DNA from: Entomortierella parvispora E1425
Lineage: Eukaryota > Fungi > Mortierellomycota
NCBI GenBank assembly: GCA_020891255.1
Contig: BQFW01000012.1
Coordinates: forward strand, 1-64,000
Direction: 5' to 3'
DNA length: 64,000 bases
Shown here: positions 9,268 through 23,000 of the stretch, piece by piece
Layout of the letters: every line of letters starts with the position of its first letter
Position numbering within the stretch: the first letter of the stretch is position 1
The notes under the pieces: model-generated
The model's database searches: none
Seen by the model: only the letters and a program-made list of their open reading frames with translations
What the model was told of the DNA's origin: nothing
Made by a program: the position numbers and the translations under genes

Positions 9268-12200
9268 ATGCATGGATCTGTGAATCCTCCCAGTCCTGCC
9301 CCCACCAACCTGCACCCTGCTTCCATGGACGCTGCTAATACGAGTAGAAACCATGGCCTTGGCCCTCAGCACTCGTACGGAGCAACCTCCAACAATGTTC
9401 CGTCCACTGCAGCACTCTCACAGTCGCCGCAGCAGCTATCTCCTCAGCAACAAAAGCTGCTTGCCAAGAGCAAGCCCAGGCCCACCAGATATGGGCTCCG
9501 TCACTCCGCGTCAAACGGCTCTCTCTCGTCCAGTTCCATCTCGTCCTCTGTATCCTCCGTCTATGGCGCTACAGTGCCCTACCCGCCACATCAGCAACAG
9601 GATCGATTGAGCATACAGCAGGGCACCAAATGGCAGACTAAAGTCAGGGAAGGTCAAGGAATTGTCGTTGGGTTCCTACGTCGACGTATCCCCATCCTAG
9701 GCTGGCTGGTCTTTTACCCCGGCTACAACTGGCGAGCCAATACGGCCGAGGATTTCTTCGCGGGCATAAGTAAGTGTGGGCATAGAGTGAAAGAGAAAGG
9801 AGAAAGGGCCCTGACCTGGCATGGGTTTGCCCAGTGACAGGGATAGAGGCGATCAGATGGCCATCCAGAGGAAAGAGTGGCAGAAAGGGCATCCTTTCTT
9901 GCTTATGACATTCATTCCCGCTACTGTTGTTGTTTTGTTTGCAAGGCACGGATGGATGGACGGACGGGACGTCGATGATGTGTCGCACTTAACCTTCTTT
10001 CGGTTCTGTGCGTCGTCGGTTTGCATCGTTCCCGGGTGCATTCTTCGCTGGGGATGCGCGAGTGAGTGCGAGCGAGTGCAGATGCTGTCCCCGCCAGCAT
10101 CTCTCCCCGCGGATCTCACTTTAATCTCAATGTCGCAACCAGGAAACGAATAGGAGCCCTCTGGACTTTTATCTCCGCTCCTTCCATTCTTCTCCAGGAT
10201 CTTCCCTCGCTTAGTTCATTAGTTCCGACTCATCGCCTTCCTTCTGATCCACTGTATCCAATGACACATGAAAGGGGGCGTCGCAACGCGTCCATGGGAG
10301 CACGCCACCATCTCATCCACAGCACTTCTAACCGTTCCCTCCTTTTTCTCTCTCCATCTCCCGCGCTCCAATGACGATCCGTCATCTCCTACCTGGTAGC
10401 CATATCTGCCGTTATCATTCCACAAAGTTTGTCCTACGCCATGCTGGCGTCTCTACCGCCTGCCCACGGCCTCTATACTTCCTTGGTCCCTACAATCGTC
10501 TATGCGATTTTTGGGACGAGCAAACACATGTCCACCGGCACCTTTGCTATCACCTCCTTGCTCCTCGGTCAGTTTGCGCACAAGATCCTCTCGGACCAGG
10601 GTTACGAGGACTCTTCAGATCCTGACTCTGAATACTACCGGCGGTACCTCCCTCTGTGCCTCACGCTCACCTTTGTGATCGGTGGCATTCAAATTCTTAT
10701 GAGTATGGCACGTCTTGGCCGCTGGACTTCAAAACACTTACTCCCAACTGCACTGGTTTCTGGATTCAACACGGCATCTGCATTCCATATCGGTACTCAT
10801 CAGTTGAAACATTGGCTGGGAATGAAGCCGCCTCGCGAAAGTGGTGTGTTTAGTATGATAAAGTCCTGGATCTGGATCGTTGGGCATTTTTGGCAGGAAA
10901 CCTCTTGGCCCTCACTCTCCATGGGTCTGGCTGCCATGATTCTGATGTATCTGCTTCAACGACTGGAATATTACAGGAGGGCAAGGTCGGATTCTGTGCT
11001 GAATGTCAATCCTGTTTCGCCTCCATCTTCGCTTTCTGCATCGACACCCCTCTTGCCTTCAGACCGTCCAGGGTTTTCCACTTCTCCTTCATTGCATCAT
11101 CCAACCTTTGAAGATGGAGCTCGACCTAACCGTAGCCACAGTAGAGGACAAGGAACTCGTTTGGGTCAGGGCTGGACAAGGGGAAGTCGTTCTCGCAGAG
11201 CCAATATTGTGCCCAAGGCAGTCTCAGATCAAGCCCTCCTGACCATGCAGGATGTCGCATTGGAGAGTTCTGGAGATGATTATGACACCGGAGCGTCTTC
11301 AAGGTCCTCACCTGCAACGCTGTCAGCTGTCCGTGTAGAATCTGCCGATACGGCTAGCTCAGTACGGTCACCGCCGCCGCAATCTCCACTTCACTCATAC
11401 GGCTCTTCAGTTCAAGGCCCAGCGGGCTTGGCCAACACTGGGGCATTGGGGCGGGTACCCAAAACAGCAACGCCACCTGTACATGTTCATCAGTACAAGA
11501 CTTTTCGACGTTCCCCCTCCAATCCATCGCTTATTGACAGCAACCGGCAACGTATTTCATTCGAGTCGGCAGAGGGATTGGATCGTTCATTTGCGAATGA
11601 AGCTTCTCCTCGACGTGCTTCTATCGTGACTTTTAGCGGTGCGAGCGACTCTGAAGGGTCATCTTCGTGCTCTAGTGCTCCGTATAGCTCGGTCGGAGCG
11701 GCTCAGCATGACTCTACTCAACAGCAGATATCTACTGCAGAGTCACCACAGGAGGTACAGGAGTCAGCTCAGGACAGGACCTGTATACCCAAGGTTCACT
11801 TTCCTATTCCGGATATTCTTATCTGCGTTGTCGTGTTCACTATAGCGACAGTGGTCTTTGATCTCGACGGACTCTATGGGATTGAGGTCATTGGGGCTAT
11901 TCCCACTGGGCTGCCCACACCGACATGGCCACCCGTGGCAATGACGGAAGGATGGACATGGGAGACTTGGAAGCCGTTAATTTGGCCTGGAATTCTCATG
12001 GCAATGGTAGTATATGTCATGTCGCTCTCAGTTGCCAAGCATTTTGGACGAGAGTATGGATATGAGGTCGATGCTGACCAAGAGATGTTGGCGATCGGGG
12101 CTGGGTCATTGTTTGGGTCATGTTTCGGCGCGTATGCTTGTACAGGCAATCTAACAAGGTCAGCCATTCTGGCGCAGTTGGGGTCCAGGACACCTTTGGC

Positions 12201-12621
12201 CTCGTTAGTCGGAGCCTTGATGGTATTGATGACTCTACTCTGGTTCACGGCGTTGTTCACGCGGATACCCAATACGATCTTGGCCACAATAGTGTTGGTG
12301 TCGCTCAAGTCTTTGATGGGCCATACGATTGAAGCAAAGCGACTGTGGCGCGTTGGTCGGAGGAAGGAAGCTTTTATTTGGTGGAGTACGTTCATGGCTG
12401 TGATTCTGTTTAGTATTGAGATTGGACTAGGCGTCGGTATAGCGACAGTTGTCCTCTTCAAGCTCTATAAGCATGGATCACGCTGGAAGCAGAGGATCCT
12501 GCGGTCGGTCAAGCAGTCGGTCTTGTATCAACGGATCATGTTGATGCTTGGCCTTCAGAGTCCCTTGCATACCACTGTCGGGCGAGGACTCTACACCGGA
12601 GATGATGATGACGATTATTAG
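9268..12621 (+). CDS. SulP/SLC26 anion (sulfate) transporter-like protein lacking STAS; exons ~9268-9769 and 10400-12621
   Basis: Spliced motif EDFFAGI|TISAVIIPQSLSYAMLASLPPAHGLYTSLVPTIVYAIFGTSKHMSTG, plus EMLAIGAGSLFGS, TGNLTRSAI and multiple TM helices. Confidence 0.9.
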
Positions 12622-13106
12622 AAAGTACTTCTTTCCTTTTTTTTACTTCCACCAATTCCCCAATCTCAGTCTCTTCTACCCCGCCCCCCCATTGCACCCC
12701 TCACGGTTGAGTTGTATCTTTTTGTTGTTTTTTGCTCAATCATTGTAATTTTAGCCTGTTCGCCTGTATAAAAAGCCCAGAAAAGTCGTTGTTCTTTTGG
12801 AGTTCTTTTTTTTTTTTATTACTTTACAACAGTGGATTCTTTTTTTTTTTTTGTCATGATCTCGACCTGCCTCCTTTTCTTGCACAGAACGCTTTTGTAC
12901 AATAACCAGAAGATACTGGAGACAATAGACATGAAAAGGTGGGGGGATAAGTAGAAGATATATGGCAATTGTAGATGGTAAAGGGTATGAGAGTGAGCTA
13001 GAAAAAGAGAATGCTACGGGAAATACACAAAGGCCCAGCTATATGTCCCCCGAGGATCTTTCTTTGCGATATCTTTCCGGCTTGAGAGAAGAAACGGGAA
13101 CCTCTT

Positions 13107-13838
13107 TTACTTCTTGACGACGTTGAGGTCAGCGCACGAAGTGTACCACTCGTCCGAGTTCAACTTCCAGCGCCACTGCATGACGTGGTAACCGGTTTGG
13201 AGGTTCTTGGGGAGGTTAAAGCAGCCACCGCAGGGCCAGATATCGGTGTCCTTGCCCTTGTCGGTGCAGTTCTTGTAGTTCAACTTGGCGACGATGTTAT
13301 CCAAGAACTCCAACTGAGTGGGGTCCTTCTTGGGGTTGGCACCGGATAAAGCAATAGTCACGGGCTGGTTCTTCTCATCGGGGACGGCGTGGTTCTTGGC
13401 GGGCCAGCGGATGCAGAGCTGTCCACCAGGGTGGGTAGTAGTGATCATTCCAGTCTTGCGGCCGTGCTGGTCCTTACCAGAGTAGGCAGCAGTGACAGGG
13501 TGACCCATGGTCTCGTCCGCACCGGGTTCCTCACCTTGCCTGCCGTTAGAGCAAGGCAAGGCGTGGTTGGGGTCGGGGTTTTTGTGCGATTGCTGGTAGT
13601 GACGGTTGGGGTCATCCGAATCGAGCTTGGCAAAAGGTTTGGCCTTCAAGGGGAAGCGACGAGCGTATCCGAAGCAGGCGCCATGCTTATCGGACCAAGA
13701 ATTGGACTTCTTGGGGTTGGTGAAGCGCCAATCAATACAGTCAGCGTACGAGTGAGATTCGACCGAGTTGGTCAAGAGGAGGACGAGCGAGGCAGCAATG
13801 AGAGCCAAGCTGGCCTTGGAGAGGGATGTGAAGAACAT
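13107..13838 (-). CDS. Secreted 243-aa protein with predicted mature N-terminal His; candidate LPMO-like copper (histidine-brace) protein
   Basis: Signal peptide ends ...TNSVES|HSYADC. WPAKNH motif, C-terminal QWRW...EWYTSCADL, 8 Cys, single exon. TATAAAA on the minus strand at ~13935-13941. The CDS is secure; the function is inferred. Confidence 0.85.
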   Translation of the reverse strand: MFFTSLSKASLALIAASLVLLLTNSVESHSYADCIDWRFTNPKKSNSWSDKHGACFGYARRFPLKAKPFAKLDSDDPNRHYQQSHKNPDPNHALPCSNGRQGEEPGADETMGHPVTAAYSGKDQHGRKTGMITTTHPGGQLCIRWPAKNHAVPDEKNQPVTIALSGANPKKDPTQLEFLDNIVAKLNYKNCTDKGKDTDIWPCGGCFNLPKNLQTGYHVMQWRWKLNSDEWYTSCADLNVVKK

Positions 13839-14326
13839 GATTTAACGAGGTGTGAGTGGAAGACGGAGGGAGTTGGAGAGAGGAGTGAGGATGAAAGGTA
13901 GAAAAAAAAAGAAGGGAGGGGGCGCGACCGAGGGTTTTATATCTAGGGGAGCAATTCATTGTCGCTTCCCTCGGGCTGTTGGGGAGAGGGTCTGCAGTGA
14001 CCGAGGTCGTGTTTGGATATGGGGGGACAGGGAAACCAGGGACAAAGCATGCAACTGTAACCTGGGACAGCATCAAATCAGTGGTTGTCGTTTGTTCTCT
14101 TTTGTCATTTGAAGTAAAGAGTACTCATTGAATCAGGTAAAAAAGACCACAAGGCTGCAGGCAGAGAGGACCACTGCTTTCGAAAGTGAACAAGCGAACG
14201 ATTAAGGACAATCGTTCTTTTTTGGCAACAGGGATCTTTTAATTGCCCTCAAACACCAATGCGAGGGCGTCCTTTGGGAATGAGATAAATTAGGCGGGTC
14301 AGAGGGACAAAATCAACCCCCGGCAC

Positions 14327-18022: not shown

Positions 18023-19936
18023 ATGTACCGCACTCCTTTACTGCTGCGCTCACTGCAACGGACATTTGCCCCAAAGGGAGCTGCCCGGCCATGCACACCA
18101 GCTCCGTCGCCCTCATGGACTTGTGTCTTGACCCGCCCACAAAGCCCCAGACGACTTTTGAGTTCCAAAACCAAGGAGCACGAGGAACAGTCCACGATGA
18201 CCGAGGCCGAGATATCCTCCGAGGTACGAGCAGGCTACCATATCTGCCCACAGAATAGAGCAAAATAAGGAGACATATTTACTTTATTTTTTCCTTCTTT
18301 CCTTTGCTGATCTGCGCAGGTCTCGGGCAAGATCAAAGCAAGGACCAAGGCACCAAAGGGCCAAGTCCAGAGCTTTAAATGGACAAACGAAATGGACAAT
18401 ATGGTCACCGAATTGCGAGCTCAAAACAAGACCTGGGACTATATCGGCTTAGCGGTTGGTCGCCCCTCCACCGCTTGTTCGGATCGTTACTATACCTGTC
18501 TGGATCCAGCCCTGAAGAACTGGACCCCAGCCATGTTTGCAAAACTGGACGAGATGGTGGAGGCCAATGTCCCCTGGCGTGATATTTCAAACACCTTGGG
18601 GGCCGTCGTCATCTCTTGTCAACATCAATGGAGGACATTAGGCAGAGGCAAATACAAGATTCAGGGCATGGGCATCTCCCTCCGGAGCAAAGCGCAAGAA
18701 TGGTCGCGGTTCGAGGTCGATGGGTTCTGGAGAGCATGGATCACACACGGCGACGGACAGTGGGCCGATATTGCAAAGGATCTGGGCACACGGAGCGCGA
18801 ACGAATGTCGGCGAGGATTCAAAGCTCTTGTTGTGGCAGCACTGAAGGATGCCCCTGGTTGGGTCAAAATCGAAGCCAGCAATTATGTGGCAGAAGTTAT
18901 CAAGGCGGCTCGTGAACGCGCAGATCAGGACACCTCCGATATTGAATCATCGCACCTCACTGGTCAAGGCAGTTCCAAATGGACGAGTGCGGAGCACCGG
19001 GCGCTTCTGGAAGCTGTGGAGAAATATGGACTATTCAGTGGATGGACAAGGATTCGCATGGAGGTTAAGCCAGAGGTCAAAGATGTCGATGTTGAGTCGG
19101 AATACTACCGATTGAGTGGCGTGTCAATGTCTTCTGAATCAAATTCATCACCAAACACGACAGAGGAGGGACTGTGGACAAAAGACGAAATAGAGAAGTT
19201 CTCAAGGATAATGATGCGATTTAGTACCGTCCCTACATGGGTTGAGGAAGCCGGTCAACAGGAAGATGGATTTCTACAGGAAGACCCACAAAAGCTGTTC
19301 TGGGGCGGCTCTCCAGTGGGAACCTCTATCAAAAAGAGAGGCAGGCCAAGGAAGTGTGATGCAGATGCATTAGTGCCTGGCGAATTCGTGTGGACCAGAG
19401 CAAGCTTGGCTCGTCTCAGCAGACTAGTGGGTCAGCAGCGACTACAGGAATCTTTGTCCGGTCATCCCGTTAACTGGCAGTGGGTTGCAGATCACATCGG
19501 ACCAGGAGTCAGTGCCAATATGTGCATCTCTGCTTGGCAAACAGCGCCAAAGTTGACTGTTGGTCGACAAGAGCCTGCCAAGTACTGGGACGAGGCTGAT
19601 GTCGATATGTTGATCAAGGGTATCCGGAAGCACGGTCGAGGCTGGATCAATGTCCGGAAAGAGTTTCTGAAGGATCGCACAACAGACTCCATTCGACGCA
19701 AAGTCAGTAATCTCGAAAATGTTCGGGATCGACTGATCCTGAAAACAAAACGAGCAATTCCTAGATTTGCGTCAATGACACAGGAGCAGCAAAGGGAAGC
19801 TCTTGACGATGCACTCAAAGACAACCCAGTCCTCTTGGCCTACAATCAACTGAAAGAGGCCTTCCAGGAGCATGACAGGAAGATTGCACGCGAAGGAGAA
19901 AAAAATGAAACTGGCGAAGGCAATACCCACCCCTAA
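18023..19936 (+). CDS. Tandem Myb/SANT-like repeat protein with predicted mitochondrial presequence; exons 18023-18223 and 18320-19936
   Basis: About 7 W-T/S-x-x-E...W repeats (e.g. KWTNEMD...TWDYIG...ACSDRY; YWDEADVDMLIKGIRKHGRGW). Arg-rich, acid-free first ~45 aa. In-frame phase-0 intron. Confidence 0.85.
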
Positions 19937-20008: not shown

Positions 20009-23000
20009 CTATGCTAAAAAGATGTTTTGGTCTTTCTGTCGCTGGTGTCCAGCCTTGTCCTCGAGCCTCAGCGCGTCCTCCTCGCCTTCCAGAATGGCGA
20101 CAATCATCTCCAGCCACCTTTCCTCTCTCTCCATCATAGTTTTCCCGGGTTCATCAATGCGTTTCTGGAGAATTTTGTCCTAAGGAAATAAGCGACAAAA
20201 AAAATATAAAAAAAACATGAGATAATTGGTCAAGAAGCAGGGGGGGGGGGGTTAATAAGTACAACCACGTACCAGTTCCTCACGCATGGTCTTGAAAACA
20301 ACCGCAGTTTTAGCGTGACACTTGAATTGAATCCATTTGTCCACTGTAACCAGCTTGGCATGGTGCTATTTGATGGATGAAGGGTTGTTATTGGGCCCCC
20401 CTAAGTATCGTTCCCCCAAGAGTTCTCCCATGTCTGTCGCCTTACCTTCACAGACAGCTCGCCACCAAAGAGCACCAGTGGGAACTGGCCTACACGACAG
20501 CTCTCCCAAACGTACATCCTCGATGACTTGACAAGACTGTTGAACACAAACCAAGGGCTCACATCCGGTCCTGTAACTGCTCCTGCTGATCCGCCTTTCT
20601 GGAAGTTGACAGACGATGGGTGGATCCAAACTGTCTCTTGTTTAGGTCCAGTAACATAGGCCTTGAGGCCTTCATTCCGCATCATCACTTTTGGATACAT
20701 GCCCGCCGTGATGGCTGCATTCAAGACTGGGATTGATCTCTGGTAGACATTGTATTCCGGAATTACGGGGCAGAATGAGATCCGGCTATTGAACCGTTCA
20801 CGGTTCAGGTCCCGCTTTGTCTCGGCATCGACACTCACGAAGCCGGTCCCTACCAAGAATCCCAGGAACTGCTTCTTCATGTCCTCCATCATGGTCAAGT
20901 TTTGGTGACTCAAAAAGTTCCTGCGGCAATAGTCGTAGATTCCGTTGGGTTTGGCCTGATAGGCTTGTCGCCATCCCAGGTAGGCGTTGTACCAGGTTAA
21001 CATGTCGGAATCCGCCAGTTTAAACCTGGCCTTGGCGGCATCTGCCTCGCTCTCGGCGCCAAAAGGCGTAACAAACGGCGACTTAAAACTGAGCATGGCT
21101 GCAATAGTCAAGATCGGGTCCAGACACTTGAAGATGGACCCAAAGAGAATCATCTTGCCAATGTGCACATCCACGGGCAAATTGCACAAATGGATACCCA
21201 GTGGTGTCAACTCCTCTGTTTTCGTCAGTGCACGAACATCCTGCAAAGCCAGAATAGCGTTTTCGATCGCTTTGACAGGCGGCGCATCCAAAGCACTTCC
21301 CAAGACTTCGGCAATTTCGCCCAGCTGACACATTTTGATCATGAGACAGAGCTCCTCCAGAGGCATTCGCATGATCTCCGGCATTTGGTATTCCGGCATG
21401 TAGTCCTCAAACGTCCTTTTGGAGAACAGATGGAAGCACACGCCTTCCTGCACTCTTCCGGCACGACCGCGACGTTGGCGAGCGTTCGATTTGGCAATAA
21501 AACGTTCCTGTAAGGTGGTCACGCGTTTCTTCTCGTCAAACTTGATTTGCTTTGATTTTCCCGTGTCGAGGACAATGGTCACATCTGGAATCGTAATACC
21601 CGTCTCGGCAATGTTGGTCGCCATCACAATCTTACGGACGCCAGGAGGTGGCACATCAAAAACCTGACTCTGGCATTCAGAGGAGACAGAGCTGTGAAGC
21701 GGCCACAACTGGAACAAGGATTCGTTTCCAAATCGACGACTGACTTTGAGCGTATCGAACAATTTGCGGATCTCTGGCATACCAGGCAGAAAAATCAGGA
21801 TTGCACCTTCCTCCGGAATATGAACAGGCTCTACATCGGCACTCTGACTGTGCTTCCTTCGATCCTCTGGGAAACAAATATGCTCCAACAGTAACTGAAT
21901 GAGTTCGTAGTTGATTTTGTTTTCATCAATTCGGTTCAGCATTTGATGGGTGCGATTGACCATGGTAGGACCCTGCGAAGTGTCGTCGCCCATTGTAATT
22001 CGAGCTTCAGCCTCCTGCGACGAAAAGTCGCCCATATCATTCTCCCACTGCAGGTGAACTGTTGTGCGACTCGCTCCTTTGCCTGCAATGTCAACCGAGC
22101 CCTTGCCTATGAATTTCGAGCAAGAGGGATTGTAAGTGAGAAATCAACAAGGTTGACCTTTGACCGCACGTTGATAAAGATGGGGCATCCAGGCCTTACT
22201 CTGTATATCTTTTCTGAAGCGGATGGCGTATTCAGAGTCCTCTTCCAGAGTATATCCAGTAAAATCAATGACATTGTCCAAGAATTGAGCATGAACAGGG
22301 AAAGTTCTTCCAGGGACTTCCAGCACAGGGCAGCCTTTAAAGTATTCTGAAAACCGTTGAGAGTCAACTGTAGCACTCATGAGAATGATCCTAAGAGCCG
22401 CAAGTTTGATCCGCAGTTAGCGAAAGGGTGTCCTCACATAAAAAATGATATAGAAAAATCGAATAGCCGCACTTACTTTAGATCTGGACGTCGGGGCAGC
22501 AACTTTTTAAGAATGATCAGGAGGAAATCCGACTCCAGAGTGCGTTCATGTACTTCGTCGATTACAAGATGCGTGACGCCCTTGAGTGTCTTGTCGCTCT
22601 CCAAGCGTCGCAGGAGGATACCCTATTTTGATGTACGTGCCAACAATAAGTGTAAATGGGAGTGTCCGTTCAGCTAGGTTCATGATCCAGTGGCAACAAT
22701 ACTTACAGTGGTACAGAACTTGAGAATGTTGGTTGGGGCAACGCGAGACTCCAGTCGGATTTGGTAGCCCACAAGGGTCTTGGGTTTTCCAGCAGAGTTG
22801 CGCGAGTCGCCCAGTTCCTCGGAGACACGATTGGCAATGGAGATGGCAGATATTCGCCGTGGCTGGGTGCAGACAATGTCGCACTGGTCTCCCAGGCCTT
22901 GCTGGAGCATATGTTCGGCCAAGTACTGAGGTACCTGTGTACTCTTTCCACATCCGGTTTCTCCAGAAACGATCACGACCTGATTTTTCTCAAGCAGCGC

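Follow-up and report, generated by a model that had tools for sequence, protein, structure and literature searches.

Positions 13107–13838 of a 64,000-nucleotide stretch of Entomortierella parvispora E1425 DNA (contig BQFW01000012.1, positions 1–64,000, of GenBank assembly GCA_020891255.1; hereafter the window) encode, on the minus strand, a small secreted protein that is probably a histidine-brace copper oxidase of the lytic polysaccharide monooxygenase (LPMO) type and a candidate for a new LPMO family. Copper binding, site geometry, catalysis and substrate are properties that we infer from the conserved residues and the predicted fold described below.

Coding sequence, secretion signal and predicted copper ligands

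The open reading frame (ORF) of 732 bases encodes a protein of 243 amino acids, and its start and stop positions are common to the homologs found by protein search and to those in A1, an alignment of 30 diverse paralogs and orthologs. The key codons were checked by hand on the plus-strand sequence. The gene and its features are as follows.

13107–13838, minus strand: complete coding sequence of the secreted LPMO-like protein, a single exon of 243 codons and a stop, from the ORF list
13755–13838, minus strand: predicted signal peptide, residues 1–28, with the predicted cut at VES↓H; the sole hydrophobic segment, with a predicted local distance difference test (pLDDT) score below 50
13752–13754, minus strand: His29, predicted His1 of the mature protein and first histidine-brace ligand; codon gtg, reverse complement cac
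13422–13751, minus strand: N-terminal loop region, residues 30–139, between His1 and the core strand, placed by the model and by motifs in alignments A1 and A2
13389–13406, minus strand: WPAKNH, residues 145–150, with His150 as the predicted second brace ligand at the end of strand 140–146
13128–13178, minus strand: C-terminal signature QWRWKLNSDEWYTSCAD, residues 221–237, with Glu230, Tyr232 and Cys235

The N-terminus, MFFTSLSKASLALIAASLVLLLTNSVES, is followed by HSYADC. His29 is flanked by Ser28 and Ser30 (VES↓HS), and the predicted cut fits the (-3,-1) rule. Among the 213 family members with an intact N-terminus, a hydrophobic core is present in 212, position -1 is Ala, Ser or Gly in 210 and position -3 is Val, Ala, Thr, Ile, Ser or Gly in 211, and in every case the invariant His immediately follows the predicted cut. 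His29 is thus predicted, from its cleavage context, to be the first mature residue. The mature protein would comprise 215 amino acids (24.2 kDa, calculated pI 8.8). A hydropathy scan found no membrane-spanning or glycosylphosphatidylinositol (GPI) tail and no C-terminal hydrophobic extension in the protein, which ends six residues past the last conserved motif with a hydropathy of -0.6 in its last 15-residue window. The protein is freely secreted and consists of a single domain.

Within the C-terminal signature, Glu230 is predicted to lie in the second sphere of the copper site, Tyr232 (codon 13143–13145) is predicted to be the axial residue, on the penultimate strand, and Cys235 is assigned to a disulfide. 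The protein contains exactly eight Cys residues (34, 55, 96, 142, 191, 203, 206 and 235), which probably form four disulfides. Three of them (Cys34, Cys55 and Cys96) lie in the loop region, together with the motifs HS(W/Y)..C.DW and C.GY(A/P)R. This region is the counterpart of the variable L2 surface in LPMOs and is longer here: 121 residues, rich in loops and with three conserved Cys residues, separate His1 from the second His, compared with about 60–90 residues in AA9, AA10, AA11 and AA15. In LPMOs this stretch makes up much of the substrate-facing surface.

His29, His150, Tyr232, all eight Cys residues and the sequence QWRW are invariant in A1 (30/30). An extended set of 281 relatives, with identities as low as about 22%, was aligned with the family profile, and counts were taken per covered column. 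In this set the N-terminal His is kept in 229 of 230 members, His150 in 267 of 267 and Cys235 in 259 of 259; Tyr232 is found in 256 of 259, the other three having Phe, and Glu230 in 201 of 261, with Gln or Asp in 28 more. Around the second His, Trp145 is present in 252 members, Pro146 in 258 and Asn149 in 257. This pattern of conservation is far beyond chance. An earlier first-pass annotation, made from the letters of the window, had proposed cleavage at VES↓H, a second His in WPAKNH, eight Cys residues and a Tyr in the axial slot of EWYTSCAD, and had suggested conservation of the two His residues and the Tyr as a check. These proposals agree with the (-3,-1) context of about 210 of 213 members, with the exact Cys count and with ligand positions that are invariant in the 30 sequences of A1 and near-invariant in the 281 relatives.

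One relative, P0155 (in A2), has Ser in place of the N-terminal His, while WPAKGH and the C-terminal motif are retained; it may be a degenerate, non-copper paralog.

Two contigs from the RNA library of one soil metatranscriptome, 90–91% identical to the gene, tile positions 13105–13839 with zero gaps, and the similarity of both ends exactly at the start and stop codons. Third codon positions account for 34 of the 40 listed differences. To judge from this substitution pattern, the contigs show an orthologue under purifying selection that is present in an RNA library, and their gapless match supports the predicted single-exon structure. No RNA runs of the source organism are listed, and the RNA evidence comes from soil/root metatranscriptome contigs. 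Three contig 'joints' were considered as introns and rejected: the content between their two sides is replaced or uncertain, and the contigs concerned match short conserved stretches only, which points to other paralogs.

Predicted fold and comparison with named LPMO families

The AlphaFold2 model built from A1 has a mean pLDDT of 87.5 and a predicted template modelling score (pTM) of 0.84, the low-confidence part being the signal peptide. The pLDDT reaches 95–97 in blocks around residues 31–40, 141–150 and 231–240, and residues 40–132 contain few regular strands at pLDDT 80–96. In a Foldseek search against the PDB, all 50 of the matches listed are LPMOs (best E value 2.8e-7), and in a search independent of Foldseek over 48,161 PDB representatives ranks 1–23 are all LPMOs or LPMO-like copper proteins, with unrelated folds scoring at most 6.9. 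All 30 of the matches listed among reviewed UniProt (Swiss-Prot) models are AA9 or AA10 LPMOs. Nearly every structural alignment pairs residue 29 of the model with the first residue of a mature LPMO chain. AA10 and AA15 give the highest structural scores, and sequence identity to solved LPMOs in the structural alignments is 10–19%. The assignment of the modelled fold to the immunoglobulin-like β-sandwich of LPMOs, for which AlphaFold and Foldseek had been proposed as a check, is solid as a prediction, and no single named family stands out.

Pfam and PDB profile searches, together with the literature, served as proxies for the CAZy/dbCAN family models, with curated Pfam cutoffs of 23 bits for LPMO_10, 27.8 bits for AA9 and 27 bits for DUF7492. 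The sole Pfam match of the window's protein at E ≤ 10 is to DUF7492 (16.1 bits, E = 0.0067, residues 188–242) and lies below the cutoff. At the same E value there is zero match to LPMO_10 (PF03067), either for this protein or for the Basidiobolus, dictyostelid and protist branches of the family; LPMO_10 is touched by four of the 30 A1 paralogs (best E = 4.9e-4), with listed scores of at most 18.1 bits, below the cutoff. AA9 (PF03443) is touched by three of the 30, none at the cutoff, and the window's protein does not reach it. The BIM1-like Pfam domain is unmatched at E ≤ 10, the threshold of the Pfam model LPMO_AA14 is not reached, similarity to characterised AA13, AA14 and AA16 sequences falls short of membership and nothing matched in NCBIfam. 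AA17-labelled chains are absent among the sequence matches at E ≤ 10 and among the top 50 structural matches, the AA17 entries of the PDB being judged by label.

Current reviews count AA9–11 and AA13–18 as the LPMO families, AA18 being the CelOCE enzyme (Santos et al., 2025, as cited in those reviews). AA18 was considered as a home for the protein and rejected; CelOCE comes from a metagenome, and AA18 surfaced in no search. By sequence comparison the protein reaches the threshold of no named family that could be scanned, and the family is equally distant from all of the named LPMO families.

Sequence profiles point to one local link. The single sequence finds only a chance match in the PDB, to a deaminase (E = 1.4), and the A1 profile gives marginal matches only. 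The profile of A2, a broader set of 35 sequences, matches AoAA11 (4mah, E = 1.6e-5), AfAA11B (E = 3.5e-5) and 7p3u (E = 2.9e-4), all within the last ~43 residues. The A2 consensus W-x-W ... E-l-Y-t-s-C-a is aligned there on W128-T-W130 ... E138-M-Y140-M-N-C143 of AoAA11, such that Glu230, Tyr232 and Cys235 fall on Glu138, Tyr140 and Cys143. We take Tyr140 of AoAA11 to be its axial tyrosine and Glu138 its second-sphere glutamate. The same C-terminal motif gives a marginal match to the AA16 chain 7ze9 (E = 0.13), and the best AA10/AA15 chain has E = 1.3. For residues 30–139, between His1 and the core strand, similarity to PDB sequences was not detected, and the region of the second His appears to be unique at the sequence level. 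The first-pass description of an unclassified histidine-brace protein is therefore retained, the LPMO_10, AA9, LPMO_AA14 and BIM1-like thresholds all being unreached, and its proposed axial Tyr finds a counterpart in AoAA11; its likeness to AA10 and AA15 gives way to AA11, the only significant sequence link.

The differences from the nearest families are specific. The likeness to AA11 (Aspergillus oryzae AoAA11, 4MAH/4MAI; A. fumigatus AfAA11A/B, 7P3U and 9EXJ) is limited to 43 C-terminal residues and does not extend over the whole domain, and identity in the structural alignments is 12–16%; the region from His1 to the second His comprises ~60 residues in AoAA11 and ~120 in the window's protein, whose family is further set apart by the N-terminal motif HS(W/Y)..C.DW and eight conserved Cys residues. 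Compared with AA10 and AA15 (ScLPMO10C, 4OY7; CBP21, 2BEM; Thermobia TdAA15A, 5MSZ), identity is 11–19%, the axial residue is Tyr instead of the Phe common in AA10 and the second His stands in A-K-N-H rather than in the T-A-x-H motif of AA10. The match to X325/Bim1 (LaX325, 6IBH) has a Z score of 8.3, below those of the true LPMO families; unlike X325/Bim1, the window's protein has neither a GPI signal nor a C-terminal linker, and it carries the E-x-Y motif of catalytic LPMOs.

The nearest sequence model is Pfam DUF7492 (PF24320), an uncharacterised and mostly ascomycete family, which is touched by 19 of the 30 A1 paralogs (best E = 8.4e-6). Relatives P0172, P0184 and P0213 exceed its cutoff (31.3, 31.1 and 29.7 bits), as do P0072 and P0293 in precomputed annotation, and the model begins about three residues before the His of P0213. 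DUF7492 proteins are also structural neighbours, with template modelling (TM) scores of 0.58–0.60 (AlphaFold-DB clusters and ESM Atlas), as is the AlphaFold-DB cluster neighbour F0ZCG5, a 'Chitin-binding type-4' protein (24% identity, TM-score 0.63). The window's family and DUF7492 appear from these matches to be related at the superfamily level. Membership of DUF7492 would explain nothing, since its function is unassigned and no paper mentioning it was found.

UniRef names homologs automatically as 'Chitin-binding type-4 domain-containing protein', 'Secreted protein' and, once, 'Lytic polysaccharide monooxygenase', and ESM Atlas clusters carry the same names with no Pfam family in common. P0009, P0010, P0015, P0170, P0193 and others bear the Chitin-binding type-4 name, and the LPMO_10 cutoff is unreached in those scanned; the names may stem from an older or different model. 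Because homologs carry such names, the likeness to LPMOs has already been noticed by machine annotation, though no study of it was found: the literature search returned no paper on such LPMOs in Mortierella, other Mucoromycota or Dictyostelium, and a search on structure-mined unclassified LPMOs yielded nothing about this family.

Distribution of the family, proposed function and alternatives

A protein search retrieved 166 relatives, nearly all of the named ones from Mortierellaceae (Podila, Linnemannia, Mortierella, Entomortierella, Actinomortierella, Gamsiella, Dissophora and Lobosporangium). The closest match is an ENA sequence with 94% identity and the best named one is from Podila epigama (81%). 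An exhaustive profile search of 1.84 billion representatives gave 446 clusters at E ≤ 1e-3, of which 216 also passed E ≤ 1e-10. Members outside the Mortierellaceae occur in Basidiobolus (43–45% identity), in the dictyostelids Heterostelium, Cavenderia and Tieghemostelium, in the amoeba Paradermamoeba, in marine protist transcriptomes and in environmental contigs, with some relatives 22–30% identical. Genomes carry several copies each; one Actinomortierella ambigua assembly, for instance, has six loci. A quick FastTree phylogeny of 189 rows (near-duplicates collapsed at a similarity ratio of 0.80), which is truly unrooted and was given a dictyostelid root for viewing only, places the query among its near-orthologs in a subclade of 33 rows that has support. 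A single clade, with 99 of the 189 rows, takes in every named Mortierellaceae sequence, with 87 other rows outside and Basidiobolus as a weakly supported sister (support 57). The tree fits a lineage-specific expansion in Mortierellaceae, and we draw no origin from it.

In the proposed mechanism, removal of the signal peptide would make His29 residue 1, and one copper ion would be bound in a histidine brace formed by the amino group and the side chain of His29 and by the side chain of His150. Tyr232 would lie axial to the copper, with Glu230 in its second sphere, an arrangement that AA11 and AA10 enzymes share. The copper would be reduced by a small-molecule or protein reductant and would then react with H2O2 or O2, hydroxylating a C–H bond beside a glycosidic linkage and so breaking a chain of an insoluble polysaccharide. 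As a guess, the substrate would be chitin, chitosan or some other component of fungal or arthropod walls; chitin-rich soil amendments commonly enrich for Mortierellaceae. Tentatively, and with somewhat less than even expectation, the family may further be an old, eukaryote-wide LPMO (AA) family of zygomycete fungi, Amoebozoa and marine protists, expanded in Mortierellaceae, with a substrate or role outside those of AA9–AA17. Equally tentatively, the unusually long, substrate-facing loop region would fit it for such a role, for example for chitosan, for different polymers of the fungal wall or for the cell walls of microbial prey.

Three other explanations were weighed against an LPMO-type enzyme of a new family. 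The protein could be a copper-binding brace protein that does not cleave polysaccharide and serves in copper capture, delivery or buffering, or in wall-remodelling signalling, as do X325 and Bim1. We regard this as rather unlikely: the BIM1-like model is unmatched even at E ≤ 10, and X325 ranks structurally below AA10, AA15, AA13, AA11 and AA9. X325 proteins are moreover GPI-anchored according to a review, whereas the window's protein stops six residues past the core motif without a hydrophobic tail. The E-x-Y second-sphere motif typical of active AA11 and AA10 enzymes is kept in the family, and paralog expansion on a large scale is commoner among enzymes that have diversified in substrate. 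Having neither a C-terminal tail nor a GPI signal, and with its second-sphere Glu conserved, the protein thus leans towards an enzyme over an X325-like chaperone, and the conserved E-x-Y, the untethered single domain and the expansion together favour an enzyme over a copper carrier. A related proposal, that the protein is a copper oxidoreductase which makes H2O2 or oxidises small molecules and so feeds other enzymes, as proposed for some AA16 proteins, seems very improbable to us. AA16 is among the weakest of the LPMO-type structural matches, and the sequence offers nothing to separate an H2O2-producing role from true LPMO activity.

The protein could also belong, as a divergent member, to one of the existing CAZy families, with AA10, AA15 and AA11 the likeliest. 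The UniRef names of homologs fit this, as do the best structural scores, to AA10 and AA15, and the C-terminal motif, which matches AA11; an 'AA10' gene was furthermore called in Dictyostelium discoideum by peptide-based annotation in a 2019 review (PMC6690862). The sequence models argue otherwise. LPMO_10 does not match the window's protein, reaches E = 4.9e-4 in the best paralog, with listed scores of at most 18.1 bits against its cutoff of 23, and finds no dictyostelid, Basidiobolus or protist branch at E ≤ 10. The 35-sequence profile matches AA10/AA15 no better than E = 1.3 and AA11 over 43 residues only, and identity to all solved LPMOs stays at 10–19%. Fungal AA10s, in turn, number only nine, all from Ustilaginomycetes, in a 2023 study of the family (PMC10617569). 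On balance membership of an existing family is improbable, and we prefer the reading as a new LPMO-type family.

Several points weigh against that preferred reading. Copper binding and activity are predictions for the family as a whole, and alignments are the basis for placing His29, His150 and Tyr232 close together in space. The Foldseek TM-scores are low (0.3–0.4), owing to the long loop region. The profile of A3, which covers only the central residues 112–200, finds zero matches in the PDB, so that the His150 region is unlinked to solved LPMOs at the sequence level. X325/Bim1 and some AA16 proteins show that a brace on an LPMO fold does not guarantee polysaccharide cleavage (PMC13353379), and PDB entry 7ze9 is itself titled 'AA16 LPMO-like protein'. 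No carbohydrate-binding module was recognised in any family member scanned, which leaves no substrate hint from that side. The soil RNA contigs, finally, come from a ~90% identical relative and not from this strain, with DNA carry-over possible.

To our knowledge, each new LPMO family (AA11, AA13, AA14, AA15, AA16 and AA17) has opened a new substrate or role and given industrially useful enzymes. If the proposed reading is true, the family, through its abundance in Mortierellaceae, fungi that are very common in soil, would be relevant to the turnover of fungal and arthropod necromass there, and its presence in microbe-eating amoebae and protists would bear on LPMO-type copper proteins outside plant-biomass decay. 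The family lends itself to direct testing, being represented by a small single-domain protein with many natural variants.

Subfamilies, domain fusions and genomic context

The extra regions of the long relatives consist of low-complexity tails, TSP1/EGF domains or a WW domain. P0147 (784 amino acids), a distant environmental member, has the LPMO-like domain fused to TSP1 and EGF domains, and the environmental members P0175 (544 amino acids) and P0196 (520 amino acids) have a C-terminal WW domain (40.7 and 24.8 bits). WW domains are normally intracellular; the WW-, TSP1- and EGF-fused members may be membrane-spanning proteins with the copper domain outside.

A paralog subfamily comprising P0062, P0101, P0113 and P0119 carries a C-terminal extension (A1 columns ~320–347) terminating in a conserved motif of the approximate form S-T-S-(I/V)-F-x-(D/E)-L-(A/T)-E-D-(N/D), and that is absent from the window's protein. 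It could be a sorting or binding tail like those described for the disordered C-termini of LPMOs.

The 64-kb window holds no second copy of the LPMO-like gene, and no functional gene cluster is found around it. The annotated neighbours are as follows, the Myb-domain protein and the helicase being ordinary housekeeping neighbours.

10429–12621, plus strand: SulP-type sulfate permease (Pfam Sulfate_transp, E = 1.7e-82)
18392–19936, plus strand: Myb-domain protein
20401–22035, minus strand: DEAH-type RNA helicase, C-terminal half (Helicase_C, HA2 and OB_NTP_bind)

The sulfate permease ORF is convergent with the LPMO-like gene; the two stretches of it that match the Pfam model are separated by a long insert of low complexity. 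A 170-residue plus-strand ORF (13389–13901) overlaps the LPMO-like gene in antisense and was set aside as a shadow ORF, all conservation and homology being on the minus strand. The gene is flanked by intergenic T-rich and A-rich homopolymer tracts, at 12740–12900 on its 3′ side and 13895–13915 on its 5′ side, which are probably ordinary fungal intergenic low-complexity sequence.
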